From: Mytilus trossulus
Lineage: Eukaryota
Length of the DNA: 64,000 nt
Direction of reading: 5' to 3'
NCBI RefSeq assembly: GCF_036588685.1
Contig: NW_026963312.1
Coordinates: forward strand, 372,001-436,000
Position numbers and translations under genes: made by a program. This document shows positions 1,596 through 64,000 of the stretch, piece after piece. The notes beneath the pieces were generated by a model that worked only from the letters and a program-made list of their open reading frames with translations, ran no database searches and had not been told where the DNA came from. The stretch's first letter is position 1, and each line of letters opens with the position of its first letter.

Positions 1596-4500
1596 CTCTT
1601 TGATGTAGTAAACTTTACAACCAAGAAATGTTCCCATTCTAACCACAGCTCTCACAGCAGAATTCATACCTGTAAAACAAATTATAGTTGATTATCTATA
1701 AGACTATATGTATGTGATATACATGCATACATTTATTCAACCTAATAGGACCTTATTAATTAGGGTGAATGAGAAATCTTAATTTTTCTTTTATCTAAAT
1801 ATACAAAAATGTACATATGACATATGTTGCAAAAGAAATTTATTATAAAAAAGTTATATATATGTTGCATAACTGCTAAACTTTCCTTTCATATTTATAT
1901 TTATTTCATATCACTAACAACACTAAAATCAGTCACTATCCTTCTTGTAGTTTACAGAAATTATGACCTTTAAAGTTTTACAGAGGCAGATGAATGTCCA
2001 TTAAAACATGTTAAATTTGGTTTTGGCATTAGAAAAATACATTAATGTGGAAAGTATTTGACAAAGATATCCAAACGGTAATTACAACCTTTAGAATCTA
2101 TTATTCATGTCAAAAAGTTTTTAAGGTTTGTTACTCATAATTGTGAGAGTAATTTCCATCACATATGCATAGAGTCTGAAAATTACAAGCCAACAAAAAA
2201 TAAATGTTTACATAAATGTTATATCAACATTCTGTTTGTGTGTATATATATATATATACATACTAAAAATAGAATAATTTATTTGATATTTCTATGTTAT
2301 CTATATATATCTATATATATATATATATCATTTCATTCTGGTATCACCTAAGTTGACCCAATATACAGTGTATCTAAATATTATTAATAATGATCATGAG
2401 AAGAATGCAATTAGTGCTACCTATAACAATTAGCATCAATATTAATTAACCTGTCAGATTATAGATAGAAATAAGGAGATATGGTATGAGTGCCAATGAG
2501 ACAACCCTCCATCCGAGTTACCAAGTTACAATGTGTAACAAGTAAAACAATTATTGTTCAATTAACTGCGTTCAACACTGAGACTTGACTCACACTGAAC
2601 AGCAAGCTACAATGTATAAAGGGCCCCAAAATGACTATTATTATTAAACAATTCAAACAGGATAACCAATAGTTAATCTATTAATGGATTAATAATTGCA
2701 TGTATTGTACTATATTTACAGAGAAGTTCAACAATAATATTCCATTCCATTCCTCAACACATATGAGTTATGACTAATATACTTAAGATCAATTCTATTT
2801 TTTTCTGGGATATTAAAATCCATAAAATATTTTTATCTAAATCAACATAATTTACATAAAATGCATTAGTTAGCATTGTTAGTGTTAGTCATGTATGTTT
2901 TGTAATATTAGTTCTGACATTTATATGTTTTGGAGTTAAGTACATGAAGTATGACCTCAATTTTCCCTGAAGTTAACTAATACGCAATTTTATTATGGGG
3001 CCAGCTGAGCCCTACCTCTGAATGCCAGATTTTCTCGCTGCTTTAAATTTCAGCGGTTTTGACATGTGGTAGTCTTTTTGACATATTTCCAATTTCAATT
3101 TTATATATCTTTAAAGTACAAAATATATCAGGCCATTCATTAGGCCACGTTTTTTTAATTTGTTGGTTTACGGATTTTCTCCATAAAAAAGTTGGGTCGG
3201 TCGGTCGGAAAAAAAGAAGAAAAAAAGATCTTTCAAGACAGAAAACTGATATGCAAAATAAAAATATATTTCACCTTTCTAATTTGTTTGTCATACAATT
3301 TTTTCATTTTTCTTAAATTTTAGTTTGATGAAATATAATTGCTCAGCTGTAAACATCGCATGACATTGTCTAATAATTTCCCCTAAAAAAAGGGGGGGGT
3401 ACACTGACAAAGACGAAATTAAATCGTCATTTCACAAACAAGAAAAACAGATTCACGTCAGTTATTTGACTTAGCTTTTAATCAAAACTTGGTGAAAACT
3501 GATAAAGAAAAAAAAAGTAAAAACGTCGTACGAAAATAAGTTTCAACACACGTGTCAAAAACGTAATAGACTCGTCCACTGGAAAAACGAGAATATCAGG
3601 TTAAATAATCTGTTGTCATGCATTCCCGTTTTTTTATCCAAATGGACGATATTTTTTTATTATCTTTAAAACAAGAAAATATCAAATGATTTGTTAAAAT
3701 TCAGTATTTTAACTTGATGTCTTGAACTACCACCTGTCCACATTTGGACAAATCTATTTATATGAGAACATGCATCTTGCGGACTGGTGACAAATAAGGG
3801 AAACGAACTTATTGTTTAATTGGTTTTAAACACAGGTTTCGTTCCGCAAAATTATTTGCGCAAACGACATTTCAAGGTCATTAATAATTGATTTGTCTAT
3901 TTTTAGAAACGTAAACTGAAAGTTTCATTTTTCACACCAGAAAGTGTCACAACTTCTGTTAGTGATTAATGCATTTCATTATATGAAAAAGGATATTTAA
4001 TTATTTTTCATAGATTTTTTCCTCAAAATTTGATCGTTTGAAAATTTATTTTCAGAAATGAAAAAAAAAGTTCTAGGGTCAGGGGGTCTAAACTAGGGTC
4101 GGTCTGGTAACTGGAACCACACACATATTTTTATTTGGACTTAGGAGTTGGTACCCGGTTCTTTTACCCTCCTATGCTACTGATAAGTACCGCCTGAATT
4201 CAGGAATTTTTTATATAAGACTTTCATTGACTATATTGAAAAGTACCACCTACAAGTAGGAATGTACCAGTTAACATGAAAGATAATGAAACCCCTAATA
4301 TATCTAGATGATGCTACAGGTTAAATCCTTTCGAATGTATTCAGAGTAATTTGATATTTAATAAAACAAATTTGTGTCTGTTTGTTATGACACATGTGAT
4401 GAACCTTGAGAAGAAGAAAAAAGTGGTTCCAAAATGCATGTGCCTCAATTTTTAGTGCATGGGCTAATCAACATTTTATTCTAAATGGCTTGGACAAGCT

Positions 4501-7500
4501 GATATTTTCATGCATGCATTAATATTAGTAGAGTAAACAAAAAGATACATGTACCTTTTATTTTAATGGCATACAAGATTGGAATATGTTGCCAAATAAT
4601 GTTTAAAAAATAAAGAAAATAAAGGATTTCAAAATTAGCGTCAAAGAGTACTTGACCAAAATTTATAGTGCGGCTTCATCAGACTCATTTTTATATTATT
4701 AAACTTATTTTTTATTTAAATTATCATTATATAAAATTTTATATGAAGTTTTTATGTCATATTAATTTGTGTGTTATTTTTTTTGTATGTCGAAACTATA
4801 AGCCGTTTACATGAAGGGACTCCATTGGGAACAAGCTTTAGAGCTTTCATGGGTTATCCCTGATAAAATATCAGCAAACTTTTTCCATGCACTTTTAAAA
4901 GGATACTACACTCATAAAATTTGTAAGGATTCCGCGGAACCCAGAGTCTCGCCTACTATTGCTGTAAATCACAGGCTCAACAAAAATGAGGAAAAAAATC
5001 AATAAAAATATTCCTCTTGATACTATCTTTTGATTGTAAGAAGCTTCGAATTCTGTCCAAGTTTGGTAAAAATCTAGGATAGTTAATGAATCTAATAAAT
5101 GTTTTGAAAACTTCAACTGCAGACTGTATGCAATGTTAACTGGAAGAAAATCTAAGTCCAAATTTATTTCTGCATACTATCTTATGATCATAAATAAGCT
5201 ACTGTCCAAGTTTGGTACAAACCCAGGATAGTTTAAGAAAGTAAACTTTAACCACAGAGTGAATGTAATGTTTCCCCGCAGAAAAACTAAGTCCATTTAA
5301 AAGTAAATACGGAAAAAATGGATTTATTTTTTCACAAAATTTACTTCTAAATACTATCTTATGATCATAAGCAAGCTTCTGTCCAAGTTTTGTACAAACC
5401 CAGGATAGTTTAAGAAAGTTATTAAAATTCTAAAAACTTTAACCACAGAGTGAATGTAATGTTTCCCCGCAGAAAAAACTAAGTCCATTTATAAGTAAAA
5501 TACGGAAAAAATAGAATTTTATTTTTACAAAAATTTACTACTGGATACTATCTTATGATCATAAACAAGCTTCTGTCCAAGTTTGGTACAAACCAAGGAT
5601 AGTTTAAGAAAGTTATTAAAATTCTAAAAACTTTAACCACAGAGTGAATGTAATGTTTCCCTGCAGAAAAAACTAAGTCCATTTATAAGTAAAATACGGA
5701 AAAATGGAATTTTATTTTTTCAAAATTTACTTCTGGATACTATCTTATGATCATAAACAAGCTTCTGTCCAAGTTTGGTAGAAATCCAGTATAGTTTAAG
5801 AAAGTTATTAAAATTTCAAAAACTTTAACCACAGAGTGAATATTTGTGGACGCCGCCGCCGACGACAGAAAGTAGGATCGCTTAGTCTCCCTTTTTCGAC
5901 TAAAGTCGAGGGCTCGACAAAAATGACATTAAATTTTACAAAGTATCAGGGGTGTGGAAATATTTGTTGTGAGCACTTGTCCCCGGGCAAGTGAAACCTA
6001 ACATTTTACTTGTCCGGAAAAATATTTACTTGCCCTGATGATCTCAATAAATATTGAAGTATTTCTTGTTAGCTAATATATGATTCTTACTCTGCACTGT
6101 TGTGCATCATCCATTTGTTTATATGTGTAAAAAAAATAGGAAAGTAGGAAATGGGTTAACATCAATGGGACAGAAACCTAACAGCAAACCAACCAATGAA
6201 ATGACATGTAAGCAGTTTTGATAAAAATTGTAGCCAGTAGGTACATATACTAAATTTGAGGAGAGTGACTGATAATTTGAAGAAATGTAAACTATAAATA
6301 ATAGATAAAACTATTGATTTTGTGGTGTTTCTCTCAACTGACACACTTGTTTTTTTCTTGATTATTCATTATTGTCTTGATGGGCAATTAAAGCGTCCCT
6401 TCTTTTTACCACTTTGACAACAAATAATGTTGACCTTTCATCTATTATAAATAAGACAAAAACTTAATTTATTTTCCGAATTTCCATAGATAGCCAGGGG
6501 CAATCTGATATCCACGATGTCTGAAATTCTCGCTTCCGTTTTTATTATTTAAATACTCTGTGTCCTGCATTTAAGGTTTTCTACTCGACTCATGACTCTT
6601 TTTGTCTTGCTTGCCCAGCTTTTTATTTAGTATTTATCAATCTGAATCTCAATACAAAATTAAAAGAAATGACACTTCCGGCAAATGACGGATAAAACCT
6701 AATCGACGATCCCGGGTCAATGGACAAAGCCAATGCAATGTTACGCGACTGGGGTTCGCATACTTATTTTTATTTATTTTGGTAATCGATCTATTTCCGG
6801 TATCATGTAATATTTATCGTCATGAACATTGATGTTTTTACTTGCTGAACATTGGTTTCTCTTACATAAATTAAACATCTCTATACGTTTTGAAATTAAT
6901 TTTATGTTTTTGTTGGATTTGAACTTTGTCTTGTGTATTTTTTTACTTGTCCACGGGCAACCAAGACAAAAATAATTACTTGTCCGGTTGTTCAAATGTA
7001 CGAGTCGGGCGAGTCGGGCATAGCATTTCCACACCCCTGAGTATGTGTTAGTATTGTCTTAATGTATCGTATATATTGTGTATTGTAATAATTCATATGC
7101 TTAATATTTTATTGAATAAAATATTATTATAATTATTATTGAAGGTATCACACAGAGAAAACAAAATTTAAAATAGCCTTTCAAAACATCATAATGATAG
7201 ACATGATAGATGTACATGTAATTATTTGAATGAGTTAGTAGCAAGAGACATAAAGTCATTACATATATTTTTATTTTTTTTTAAATAATGGATGATACAT
7301 GTACAAGAACAACTAAATTTAAGGTCAGTGTGGGATTCCATGCTGTAGAATTATTTTTTATATAGTTTTCCAGATACTGTGTATCGATCAATGTTGGAAT
7401 TTGCGCTATTCAGCTCACCTGGAAAACTAATTTAGATATCAGTGTCTGAAAACTATGATAAATAATCCAATAACCAACTTCGACAAAGCAAGGCCCCCAT

Positions 7501-61500: not shown

Positions 61501-62154
61501 GTTAATACACACCAACACGACGGATTAAGCAATTAAAAAAAGGGGGTCCCAACCCAGGGTAAAATGGGGGTGGGGTCCAACTACATGTCTGTCCCATTAC
61601 AAATACATTGATTGTCCAAACAAATGGGGGGGGGGGGGGGCTCCAAACCCGTACCCCTTTTGGATCCGCCACTGTACCAATTGTCAATATATTTAGTGTG
61701 AATTAATTTGATAGATTTATTCAAAAATTTATAGTTTCCATAATGTTTTATTTCTTGTTTAATCTAAAAACAAATATAAACTTTATGATAGGCCTATAAT
61801 AAACTCAATTTCTCATATTTTGTTGCATGAATGATTTTGCCAAAACTGTAGCTCGAAAATTGTAAGATGACCTATACAAGAGGATCTGATCGGGGCCCTT
61901 CATTTAGAGCCTTACTGGCGAGACATTTCTGCCACACTACCAATTCGTTCATAGACCGTCGTTTTGGCTACACTACGAATCCGTCCACAAGTCGTTTTGG
62001 GCCGCTTCCAATACAGCCACAGCTGTTTCAGTCATTTATAATAATTATTAATTCTTAATCAATTATATTCCTCCCTTTATCATGTTTATGAACAATAAAA
62101 AAAAACCACTTTACAAAGTATGCATGGCAAAACTGGCAGTTAGATCGAAACTTC

Positions 62155-62335
62155 AGTGGCCGAAACGTCTGTGGCCGAAACGTCTGTGGCCGAAACATCT
62201 GTGACCGTCTGTGGCCGTGTGGTCGTGAATGACGTTACGTCTGTGGCCGTGCACGACTTTACGTCTGTGGCCGTGTGGTCGTGAACGACGTTACGTCTGT
62301 GGCCGTGTGGTCGTGAACGTCTGTGACCGAAACGC
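62155..62335 (+). repeat. Tandem ACGTCTGTGGCCG-containing repeats, probably transposon subterminal repeats
   Basis: 15-bp then ~32-bp units; inverted counterparts GTCGTTTTGG at about 61957 and 61991. Confidence 0.7.
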
Positions 62336-62410
62336 CGGATAATGTTACCGGAACGTCCCGCAACGATTTCTATATTCTTTTATACTGTTCTCTATTCTTT
62401 ACGTGTTTTT

Positions 62411-62534
62411 CACAGGCACTTGTCTCAGAAAAAAAAATATTACCTATATACCTTAAGAAAAAAAAAATACCTATATACCTTAATATAACATTAAGGTATA
62501 TAGGTAATTTTTTTTTCTGAGACAAGTGCCTGTG
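62411..62534. mobile_element. 124-bp palindromic MITE sharing termini with the 10921-11636 foldback
   Basis: CACAGGCACTTGTCTCAGAAAA...TTTTCTGAGACAAGTGCCTGTG; no clean TSD. Confidence 0.7.
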
Positions 62535-63640
62535 TTTTATTTTCTATTCTCTATATCTTTAATTTTGCCTATGCTCATTATTCTATAAATTTTTGCCCTT
62601 CAGTCTGCATTTTTACATTTTTCTATTCTGTTAACCCAATCAATATCCCTTGAATTTTTTAATCTTTAAAAGTATCACCCCAATTCAACGTCCTTGGGGG
62701 ACTAATAAAGGACGAAATCGTTTCTAAAAACTAATTTTACTGCTCTCAATATATTTGTGTGTGACTACCTTAACATGTGGTGGTAAAGAGAAAGAGAACA
62801 GGCATGCTAATGTAATTTGATACGGAGGATATATAGATGATTATACTATTTACAAACATCATCCCGGAGCACCCCTGTGATTCCGGTATGATACGTACTG
62901 AACTACGTTTCCAACAACCATATACAAATCAAGTATATAACATCCCCGCCCCGAAAGAAAAAGAAATTCAAAAATTTCGTGATGGTTGTTGGTAAACGTA
63001 GGTCAGAGAATATAAAACTAAAATAAGACAACACACATAATAGTCGACCATAATCAAAAAGATAATTAAAAAAAAAAATATATATATATACATGTATATG
63101 CAAGTTTCTCACTAAACTTCAACAGGTTCAAGCTATCAAATCTCTGACGCCGACTACCACACAAATCTCTTACAATGTAATATTTTCTCATCACAGTTCT
63201 GGTCTTGCGCATGAAACATTCAAATGAATCATAATTTCAGTTATGCAATTGAGGAATCATAGTCTATTTGATAAGTCTAGCAGAGACCTGAAACTCCTAA
63301 TATTTCAGATAATACATTCATAAATAATATAAACTTTCACACACAGATTGGGTTAACACTGACACTCTCACTTACAAAAACATACGAAAATATTATAGGA
63401 AAAATAAACAGGTTTTATATCTAGAACATGCCAATCAACCTCATTTGACACAAAGTCTATCAATGAAACGACCAATAACAACTAGTAATAATAATACAGT
63501 GATAAGAGAAAGGTGGCAGTCACACACAGTACATTCAAAAATCATAAATCTCAATACAAATTAACAATCAAATCAAATAAAGTCTCAATTATGTCTACTG
63601 TTATCAACGATAACTGGTCCCTGGTACTGGACGAATATAA

Positions 63641-63887
63641 TAGCGATGCAATCATCACTGATTAACACAACATCTGGATTCAGCACGTTTGGCGATGCAA
63701 TCATCACCGATTATAACATCATCATTGTCAAACAAGTGTGGCGATGCAATCATCACCGAACATCAAATCACTAAGCTGGTTGTGGCGATGCAATCATCAC
63801 CGATCATATAAAACATCTTCGTAGGTATTTACAAAAAAAACCACATTCAAGTAAACGGTAACGCTTTGGCGATACAATTATCACCGA
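63641..63887 (-). repeat. Array of five 21-nt hairpin repeats with divergent spacers
   Basis: TGGCGATGCAATCATCACCGA (or variant) at 63641, 63690, 63739, 63783, 63867; spacers 28, 28, 23, 63 nt. Confidence 0.9.
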
Positions 63888-64000
63888 ATAATAACAAAAT
63901 ATCCATGAGCTCTGAATGTGTGATAATCTTACTTTCCAACATTTTTGAAACAATTACGGTATACTACACTAGCGGAGGTGGCCTAGCAATTATCAGCTCC

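Follow-up and report, generated by a model that had tools for sequence, protein, structure and literature searches.

What are the five short palindromic repeats that lie near the end of a 64,000-nucleotide (nt) stretch of the Mytilus trossulus genome (contig NW_026963312.1, positions 372,001 to 436,000; this whole stretch is hereafter the window), and are they read as DNA or as RNA? The first-pass annotation, made from the letters alone, had described them as an array reminiscent of clustered regularly interspaced short palindromic repeats (CRISPR), in which differences between the units preserve a hairpin. As shown in this study, the array is not free-standing: it is part of the 3' untranslated region (UTR) of a minus-strand, 8.1-kb long terminal repeat (LTR) retrotransposon of the Ty3/Gypsy type in the Mytilus genome. 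Comparison of the repeats within this element, among its relatives and in its derivatives argues that they are very probably a selected sense-strand RNA hairpin of this guild of retroelements. As to what the hairpin does, we propose a multivalent recognition tag for Gag or nucleocapsid, i.e., a putative packaging signal, and put the probability of this role at about 0.45.

On the plus strand of the window, the 20-mer pattern GGCGATGCAATCATCACCGA, allowing up to three mismatches, matches five sites only, at 63642, 63691, 63740, 63784, and 63868 (2, 0, 0, 0, and 2 mismatches, respectively), for a chance expectation of 0 (none of 100 dinucleotide shuffles gave any match). An independent repeat search returned the same five copies, with start-to-start spacings of 49, 49, 44, and 84 nt, in agreement with the spacers of 28, 28, 23, and 63 nt previously counted for 21-nt units. 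The repeats, of 18 to 20 nt each, span 63642-63887. Read on the minus strand, and scored with the covariance model introduced below, the copies are the following:

Positions 63868 to 63885, minus strand: hairpin A, the 5'-most on the RNA, GGUGAUA-AUUG-UAUCGCC, loop-closing pair A-U (38.4 bits; -8.2 kcal/mol)
Positions 63784 to 63801, minus strand: hairpin B, GGUGAUG-AUUG-CAUCGCC (35.6 bits; -10.0 kcal/mol)
Positions 63740 to 63757, minus strand: hairpin C, GGUGAUG-AUUG-CAUCGCC (40.2 bits; -10.0 kcal/mol)
Positions 63691 to 63708, minus strand: hairpin D, GGUGAUG-AUUG-CAUCGCC (38.4 bits; -10.0 kcal/mol)
Positions 63642 to 63659, minus strand: hairpin E, the 3'-most on the RNA, AGUGAUG-AUUG-CAUCGCU, outer pair A-U (35.8 bits; -7.6 kcal/mol)

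Copies 2 to 4 in plus-strand order share one sequence, a 7-bp stem with one U·G, and this stem architecture and the AUUG loop recur in all five minus-strand copies. Direct reading bore out the paired double changes reported for the two outer copies, since AGCGATG..CATCACT in copy 1 and GGCGATA..TATCACC in copy 5 (plus strand) each differ from copies 2 to 4 solely by such a change. Folded singly, the minus-strand copies adopt the expected hairpin at -7.6 to -10.0 kcal/mol, with z values of -2.1 to -3.3. The spacers, which had been called dissimilar, are partly homologous (Tandem Repeats Finder unit of 49 nt, 2.4 copies, 82% matches), indicating that the array grew by tandem duplication and leaving the likeness to CRISPR as one of look only. 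One alternative starts from this duplication of a 49-nt unit, in which case the repeats would be a neutral, functionless multiplication of a palindromic UTR segment. As for the GAUGUU motif noticed 5' of the hairpins, it is indeed present 1 to 10 nt 5' of four of the five hairpins of the window; it is seen in the family of the window element only, being absent from the other families described below, and was rejected as a conserved co-motif.

The terminal 600 nt of the window are found at nine places of the 1.3-Gb genome with 91 to 100% identity, so that the array belongs to an interspersed repeat. Reading past position 64000, a check advised in the first-pass annotation, disclosed the host element, a Ty3/Gypsy retrotransposon with gag and pol. 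The sequence beyond the window end was fetched as L010 and L015 (L010 2600-8599 being window 62600-68599), and self-BLAST revealed two 260-bp direct repeats, 100% identical, at window-equivalent positions 62683-62942 and 70524-70783, the latter (L015 524-783) being the 5' LTR. Within the window, the element comprises:

Positions 62680 to 62683, no strand: target-site duplication CCAA, with its twin after the 5' LTR at L015 784-787, beyond the window
Positions 62684 to 62942, minus strand: 3' LTR, 259 to 260 bp, sense reading TGTTATATAC...CGTTGAA, from self-BLAST against the 5' LTR
Positions 62943 to 62952, minus strand: GGGGCGGGGA, like a polypurine tract (PPT), adjoining the 3' LTR on its sense 5' side, read from the sequence and of presumed function
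Positions 62943 to 63963, minus strand: 3' UTR from the pol stop to the 3' LTR, ~1.0 kb, without a methionine-started sense open reading frame (ORF) of at least 60 amino acids
Positions 63964 to 64000, minus strand: C-terminal codons of pol with the stop (63964-63966); the ORF runs past the window to L010 8322 and encodes 1452 amino acids, protease-reverse transcriptase-RNase H-integrase

Numbered along its own sense strand, the whole element is laid out as follows:

Element 1 to 260, sense: 5' LTR
Adjoining the 5' LTR on the element-internal side, sense: TGGTGGAGGACC, like a primer-binding site (PBS)
Element 467 to 1207, sense: ORF0, an extra ORF of 246 amino acids (L010 9577-10000 plus L015 1-317)
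Element 1287 to 1304, sense: leader hairpin
Element 1353 to 2531, sense: gag
Element 2462 to 6820, sense: pol
From 78 nt past the pol stop, sense: five-hairpin array, then ~700 nt more of UTR, the PPT-like GGGGCGGGGA, and the 3' LTR

The Ty3/Gypsy assignment follows from the identical LTRs with their CCAA duplication, from a minus-strand gag of 392 amino acids with a capsid domain (Pfam Retrotrans_gag and Ty3_capsid) and two CCHC knuckles, and from the order of the Pfam domains in the 1452-residue pol (protease, RVT_1, RNase H, Integrase_H2C2, and rve), which is that of Ty3/Gypsy elements. The pol frame is -1 relative to gag, and Pol residues 380-1200 are 100% identical to a Mytilus edulis protein. 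The hairpins are internal to the element, 700 to 940 nt from the LTR, which excludes a transposase-binding subterminal repeat, one of the outcomes that the first-pass annotation had named as fatal to its own proposal. A CRISPR array is rejected as well, given a eukaryotic host, a location inside an LTR retrotransposon, and spacers of 23 to 63 nt that are partly homologous. The earlier suggestion of a retroelement packaging or processing array was right about the retroelement, as the identical LTRs, gag, and pol attest, while its packaging half stays a proposal.

Is the hairpin confined to this array? A covariance model was built from the hairpins and run unfiltered over the window, L010, and L015, resulting in six strong matches of 31.5 to 40.2 bits, the next best scoring 10.1 bits. 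Five of these are the 3' UTR copies, and the sixth (L010 9475-9502) lies in the leader, where GGUGAGA-AUUG-UCUCGCC (L010 9480-9497), separated by 79 nt from the ORF0 stop and by 48 nt from the gag AUG that follows, has two pairs altered on both sides. With filters off, the model found no hairpin within gag or pol of the window element, nor any after its gag stop. Genome-wide, the 18-mer with up to two mismatches occurs at 119 sites versus 2 for the reversed control, and the covariance search gave at least 145 matches (145 of the 150 scored, of ~475,000 first-look candidates). Nearly all genome matches fall in clustered arrays of guild elements and their derivatives, about ten isolated two-mismatch sites coming besides. 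In scans of prokaryotic-genome and metagenome contigs, the matches listed were only single ones per contig, which we took for chance matches; viral contigs gave 14 single matches to the hairpin pattern and no Pol relative. The evidence for conservation comes from this one mussel genome.

Twenty further loci were fetched (L028-L047), six of which hold Pol relatives 45 to 60% identical to the window Pol. The first hairpin stands 31 nt past the end of the Pol match in L029 and 93 nt past it in L030, followed by arrays of five or six, and hairpin strand equals pol strand in all seven loci with a Pol match. Comparison of the window element with these 20 loci (blastn, E <= 1e-5) detected similarity in the pol region only, save for one 100-nt match in the ORF0 region (L032), so that the hairpins are islands of identity within otherwise unalignable UTRs. 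Leader copies are found here too: upstream of gag, L289 has three hairpins (1554-1707) of the form GGUGAGG-ACUG/AAUG-CCUCGCC, and L288 has three (1363-1612) with GGUGAUA/UAUCGCC stems and the loops AUAG, UUUG, and AAG. All six have fully paired 7-bp stems, one of them (L288 1363-1389) with a loop of 3 nt. Along the genomic RNA, the stretch immediately upstream of gag carries one to three copies, and an array of five or six follows immediately downstream of pol. Separately, a repeat of more than 6 kb without gag or pol matches (L035-L037; C9:38.09 Mb, C12:12.82 Mb, and C8:64.13 Mb) bears three hairpins at distances of 146 and 91 nt; in one of them, AGAAAUG-AUUG-CAUUUCC, two pairs are changed on both sides.

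The natural variation of the motif could then be used as a test of structure. A fuzzy search (up to five substitutions) over 30 loci yielded 63 distinct 28-mers, of which 57 were kept for the covariation count; the six L288 and L289 leader hairpins were found later and stand outside this count. A sequence at the pol 3' end, GCUGAUAAUUGCUAGGCC (seven instances), does not form the hairpin and was excluded. Among the 57 copies, 96.7% of the 399 stem cells pair, and both-sided changes occur at six of the seven pairs, the remaining pair being invariant. The alternative pairs are, by stem position, G-C/A-U via G·U (1), U-A (2), U-A and A-U (3), A-U (4), G-C (6), and A-U (7). None of 500 shuffles equaled the observed paired percentage, the number of pairs or of cells changed on both sides, or the covariation score, the count of further pair types being equaled by 10 of the 500, and sliding the 3' partner by 1 to 3 columns lowered pairing to 18 to 67%. 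Extension of the helix by three flanking pairs is unsupported, about half of those cells pairing. The lower stem GGUGA/UCGCC with its U·G is nearly invariant and the two upper pairs covary freely; the loop is usually AUUG or ACUG (AUUG in 43 of 57), with a 3' G in 56 of 57.

Smaller differences, which are less subject to bias, follow the same rule. Sixteen genome matches carry exactly one mismatch, 15 of them in the stem: 12 turn pair 1 into G·U, one turns U·G into U-A, and two break a pair, so that 13 of 15 keep pairing. The loop-closing pair shows no single changes, its double-change form occurring 26 times among the matches listed. Altogether, the selection on structure suspected in the first-pass annotation gains support from compensatory changes at six of seven pairs across diverged families, and the other genomic copies to which it had pointed as a check differ by compensatory rather than random changes. 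Neutral duplication is difficult to reconcile with an identical 18-mer amid unalignable UTRs of elements whose Pol proteins are 45 to 60% identical, with covariation at six of seven pairs that 0 of 500 shuffles equal, with the presence of the motif in the leader as well, where the upper pairs differ, or with its retention in the deletion derivatives and the miniature element described below. Within the young family, the hairpins show no significant excess of conservation over the spacers, as neutrality would have it; even so, we disfavor this explanation as extremely improbable.

On which strand, and on which molecule, does selection act? Watson-Crick pairs number 321 on either strand of the 57 copies, the other cells being 65 G·U and 13 mismatches in sense and 4 G·U and 74 mismatches in antisense; 51 of the 57 distinct copies retain the asymmetric U·G, which is a C·A on the opposite strand. 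The minus strand favored in the first-pass annotation is the sense strand of the retroelement, with non-Watson-Crick pairs biased 65 to 4 toward it as G·U. These counts also bear on another explanation, according to which the repeats would be imperfect palindromes in duplex DNA bound by a dimeric transcription factor, as an internal enhancer or promoter. Arrays of factor sites are known in the UTRs of LTR elements, the core GATGCAAT/ATTGCATC presumably resembles a composite C/EBP-ATF site, and the canonical copy has eight of nine positions of the C/EBP-ATF core TGATGCAAT. Retention in the miniature element would fit as well, since a nonautonomous element also needs transcription. However, the variants GGUGAUA..UAUCGCC, GGUGAGG..CCUCGCC, and AGAAAUG..CAUUUCC alter the core on both arms and yet stay paired, six of seven pairs covary, and neither the retained U·G nor the sense-biased G·U is expected of a duplex site. 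We consider a DNA site distinctly improbable, although two runs show a switch in the strand of the RNA reads close to the array, an observation made on very few molecules.

The read evidence itself is sparse. The 20 sequencing runs in which the stretch was detected are not recorded as RNA, and the four raw-read RNA runs considered were identified by species label alone. The array and pol run on without a break in contigs from two runs guessed to be RNA, and all 10 of the differences that these contigs show from the window in the array region lie in spacers. Two raw RNA runs from different studies gave only 31 and 57 reads over 6 kb (L010 2600-8599, window 62600-68599); some of these are copies of one molecule, and 14 run from the LTR into different sequence, i.e., another locus. 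First mates map to the minus strand over the 3' LTR and 3' UTR and, over pol, to the plus strand (run X21) or mostly to it (run X24), few molecules being involved.

Nonautonomous derivatives provide a natural deletion analysis. Copies at L002, L003, and L006 (also L019, L023, and L024; C12:46.12 Mb, C13:1.09 Mb, and C13:47.17 Mb) have a common internal deletion that joins L010 7848 to 9130. The resulting derivative of ~4 kb is without the gag C terminus and most of pol and retains the array and the leader hairpin; its LTRs begin at TTCAACG, as in the window element. The unrelated flanks of L002, L003, and L006 indicate that the deleted form inserted at least three times, and one deletion-derivative junction is present in a contig of a public sequencing run. 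A second, 1.84-kb element with 203-bp LTRs, akin to terminal-repeat retrotransposons in miniature (TRIM), was found at seven loci (L039-L045), with LTRs 97.5% identical in the copy at L039 2221-4060 (minus strand). It has no gag, pol, or ORF0 match and open frames of at most 88 codons, and it shares with the window element only the LTR start TGTTATATA, the PBS start TGGTGGA, the PPT GGGGCGGG, and two hairpins; GGGGGCGGGA occupies the PPT place directly before its 3' LTR. Further copies of its ACUG-loop hairpin are scattered across the genome, as are more copies of the element beyond these seven. In L028 and L032, an ORF0-like remnant is joined directly to a hairpin array of the L029 type. Nonautonomous LTR elements must keep integrase ends, a PBS, a PPT, and a packaging signal. 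The hairpin is a structured sense-RNA element outside the coding parts, retained both in the nonautonomous derivatives and in the TRIM-like element, as such a signal should be.

We propose a model in which the Gag of the element would bind the hairpins as multivalent, sequence- and structure-specific sites, and this binding would mark the RNA for recruitment to virus-like particles, the contacts being made with the unpaired 3' G of the loop and with the wobble-bearing lower stem. Retroviral CCHC knuckles bind unpaired G in tetraloops, and the Gag C terminus has, in three of three families, two C-X2-C-X4-H-X4-C knuckles 13 residues apart with conserved neighbors. According to excerpts of a review, the packaging sequences of Ty1 and Ty3 are not precisely defined, and Ty3 packaging depended on UTRs or POL (PMC4974528).

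A number of observations, here taken together, weigh against this model or against the structure on which it builds. Gag as the binding partner is purely what we infer. Retroviral packaging signals lie mainly in the 5' leader, unlike most copies of this hairpin, which are in the 3' UTR. The near-invariance of the lower stem at ~50% Pol identity could also stem from a host partner that is itself conserved or from a site read at the DNA level. The whole 366-nt array region folds in sense at -94.9 kcal/mol (z of -1.44), not significantly stabler than shuffles (the antisense gives -64.4 kcal/mol, z of +0.77), and, of the five plus-strand versions, the two tested fold as well, their free energies being -6.8 and -7.2 kcal/mol and the stem containing a 1x1 internal loop. 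The switch of read strand lies near the pol stop and array, in very few molecules and with library chemistry unspecified. Six of the 63 28-mers were excluded as nonhomologous (one in pol on the opposite strand, two forms of a nonpairing sequence at the pol 3' end, two isolated ones, and the reverse reading of one perfect palindrome). Covariation cells are nonindependent, reflecting few events, since copies and repeats are inherited; covariation at the level of pairs (six of seven) is the safer measure than cell counts. Finally, in nine copies of the young family of the window element, variation affects 4 of 90 hairpin sites, 13 of 154 spacer sites, and 45 of 699 sites elsewhere in the UTR, so that the hairpins do not vary significantly less than the sequence around them; the changes in this family are mostly post-insertion and neutral.

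In another explanation, the hairpins would be RNA sites for a host RNA-binding protein acting in nuclear export of unspliced RNA (the task of the retroviral constitutive transport element), protection from the decay that a stop codon can trigger, localization, or control of translation. The covarying sense-strand structure suits such a partner, whose own conservation would explain the near-invariant lower stem. Position fits as well: both sites lie soon after a stop codon, that of pol for the arrays (31 to 93 nt away in three families) and that of ORF0 for the leader copy (79 nt away), and the location of the array recalls retroviral export and stability elements, which sit in the 3' UTR. A purely anti-decay role, however, is opposed by the lack of any hairpin past the gag stop, where most ribosomes should terminate, and the TRIM-like element keeps two copies despite having no long ORF. 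Moreover, nearly all genome matches lie within clustered arrays of guild elements and derivatives, and no Rfam family matches. A host-protein site is, in our judgment, possible and somewhat unlikely.

Another protein of the element itself could also be the reader, namely the ORF0 product, which is similar to SGNH/GDSL hydrolases, the reverse transcriptase, or the integrase. In the window element, L028, and L032, hairpins come immediately after ORF0 or a remnant like it, and in L038 they follow at a distance of ~430 nt. The SGNH fold is not known to bind RNA, and the hairpins occur without an ORF0 match in L288/L029, L289/L033, L030, and the TRIM-like loci, which makes this a very improbable explanation despite a precedent in some non-LTR elements, whose esterase-type ORF1 proteins are thought, according to an excerpt of one report, to act in ribonucleoprotein assembly (PMC5408684).

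ORF0 deserves a description of its own. Located between PBS and gag (it is also present at L013 3463-4200, plus strand), it has 157 homologues of ~240 amino acids (E <= 0.001), those named to an organism being from bivalves (Mytilus, Pinctada, and Mizuhopecten). In one source, a homologue is annotated as an SGNH hydrolase-type esterase, Pfam Lipase_GDSL is weakly matched by 5 of 25 family members, and the invariant residues D-S-K, G, G-T-C, and D-G-x-H are compatible with SGNH blocks; a profile search of ORF0 found no relative in the PDB. GDSL ORFs are described as ORF3 in bdelloid LTR elements and as ORF1 in some non-LTR elements, a pre-gag position being unmentioned in the same excerpt (PMC5408684).

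Does the hairpin belong to a known system? Scanning L010 2600-4100 against Rfam (cmscan, E <= 10) yielded five matches of 13.9 to 19.8 bits, for gathering scores of 35.7 to 64, none of them to a cis-regulatory hairpin family of this kind. The iron-responsive element (IRE), the selenocysteine insertion sequence (SECIS), and the histone 3' stem-loop are rejected, none having an Rfam match near its gathering score. The first-pass annotation had likewise seen no match to a consensus of the IRE, SECIS, or constitutive decay element (CDE) type. A C/D box small nucleolar RNA, whose C box GUGAUGA in the 5' arm presumably resembles, is rejected too, as sR45, SNORD14, and snoZ157 score 13.9 to 19.8 bits versus gathering scores of 40 to 64 and the box is lost in GUGAUAA, a common variant. 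A literature search did not find the motif, and a survey of mollusc LTR elements, aside from supplementary element lists that could name the clade, makes no mention of hairpin, stem-loop, esterase, or untranslated (PMC6238403).

Among systems that work alike, the retroviral psi signals come first. The leader stem-loops of human immunodeficiency virus type 1, the GACG hairpins of murine leukemia virus (MLV), and the psi of MLV and VL30 are likewise short, multicopy sense-RNA hairpins near gag with an exposed loop G, and psi is common to an autonomous element and to the noncoding elements that it mobilizes. Unlike them, the mussel copies are near-identical repeats lying mostly 3' of pol, their binding is proposed by us, their loop is not self-complementary, so that no kissing dimer is expected, and no relation by sequence or in Rfam was found. 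Rat VL30 has, per an excerpt, a dimerization and packaging sequence (PMC4859993). The nsP1 signal of alphaviruses and the repetitive structural motifs of coronaviruses are also arrays, with four to six hairpins that resemble one another and share a conserved feature in the loop; there the capsid protein reads them. The difference is that these RNA-virus arrays sit in coding regions and the mussel array in the UTRs of an LTR retrotransposon.

By its place between the last ORF and the 3' LTR, and by working better in several copies, the constitutive transport element of Mason-Pfizer monkey virus is comparable, but it is one long hairpin with two internal loops, whereas the mussel motif is a 7-bp hairpin that also occurs in the leader and has no Rfam match. 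The analogy drawn earlier with the transferrin-receptor IREs stands for the form, five similar hairpins in a 3' UTR, and fails otherwise: an IRE is part of a cellular mRNA, its loop is CAGUGN, and it includes a bulged C, and the mussel host RNA is that of a retrotransposon, without an IRE or other Rfam match at E <= 10. The Su(Hw) array of the Drosophila gypsy leader shares short repeats, AT-rich spacers, and the UTR of a Ty3/Gypsy element; it acts, however, as duplex DNA without a hairpin, in contrast to the strand-specific G·U and compensatory changes of the mussel array. In its probable mode of working, the hairpin is closest to retroviral psi and to the repeated packaging stem-loops of RNA viruses, in its position it resembles 3' UTR transport elements, and by sequence it is a member of none of these. 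It is likely a new RNA motif of a known sort, a cis-acting retroelement signal, with packaging as its most probable role.

An extended form of the Gag-tag model may be envisaged, in which the hairpin would be a packaging currency common to the whole mussel Ty3/Gypsy guild. Gag multimers would read hairpins at both ends of the RNA, leader and post-pol, and copackaging would extend to any RNA with the hairpin, including those of other families, of deletion derivatives, and of TRIM-like parasites. We hold this guild-wide reading to be unlikely. If it were true, it could explain parasitism in trans and the exchange of ORF0 and hairpin arrays as modules among these families, and the hairpin would be the first defined packaging signal in a metazoan Ty3/Gypsy clade.

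The cis-acting RNA signals of LTR retrotransposons are poorly known, and the natural variation described here amounts to a mutational analysis (six of seven pairs) together with a deletion analysis, leaving a clear 18-nt candidate motif open to a simple binding test. The hairpin is a candidate new RNA family, and its covariance model can mark this Gypsy guild and its noncoding parasites in mussel genome annotation. More generally, arrays of CRISPR-like appearance in animal genomes can be retroelement UTR hairpins.

Two minor observations concern the DNA just outside the 3' LTR. Tandem repeats with 15-nt (CGAAACGTCTGTGGC) and 24- to 56-nt units occupy window positions 62146-62340. At 62411-62534, some 150 nt away from the element, a perfect inverted repeat of 28 nt surrounds a second one of 29 nt, and these look like a small foldback insertion or one similar to a miniature inverted-repeat transposable element.

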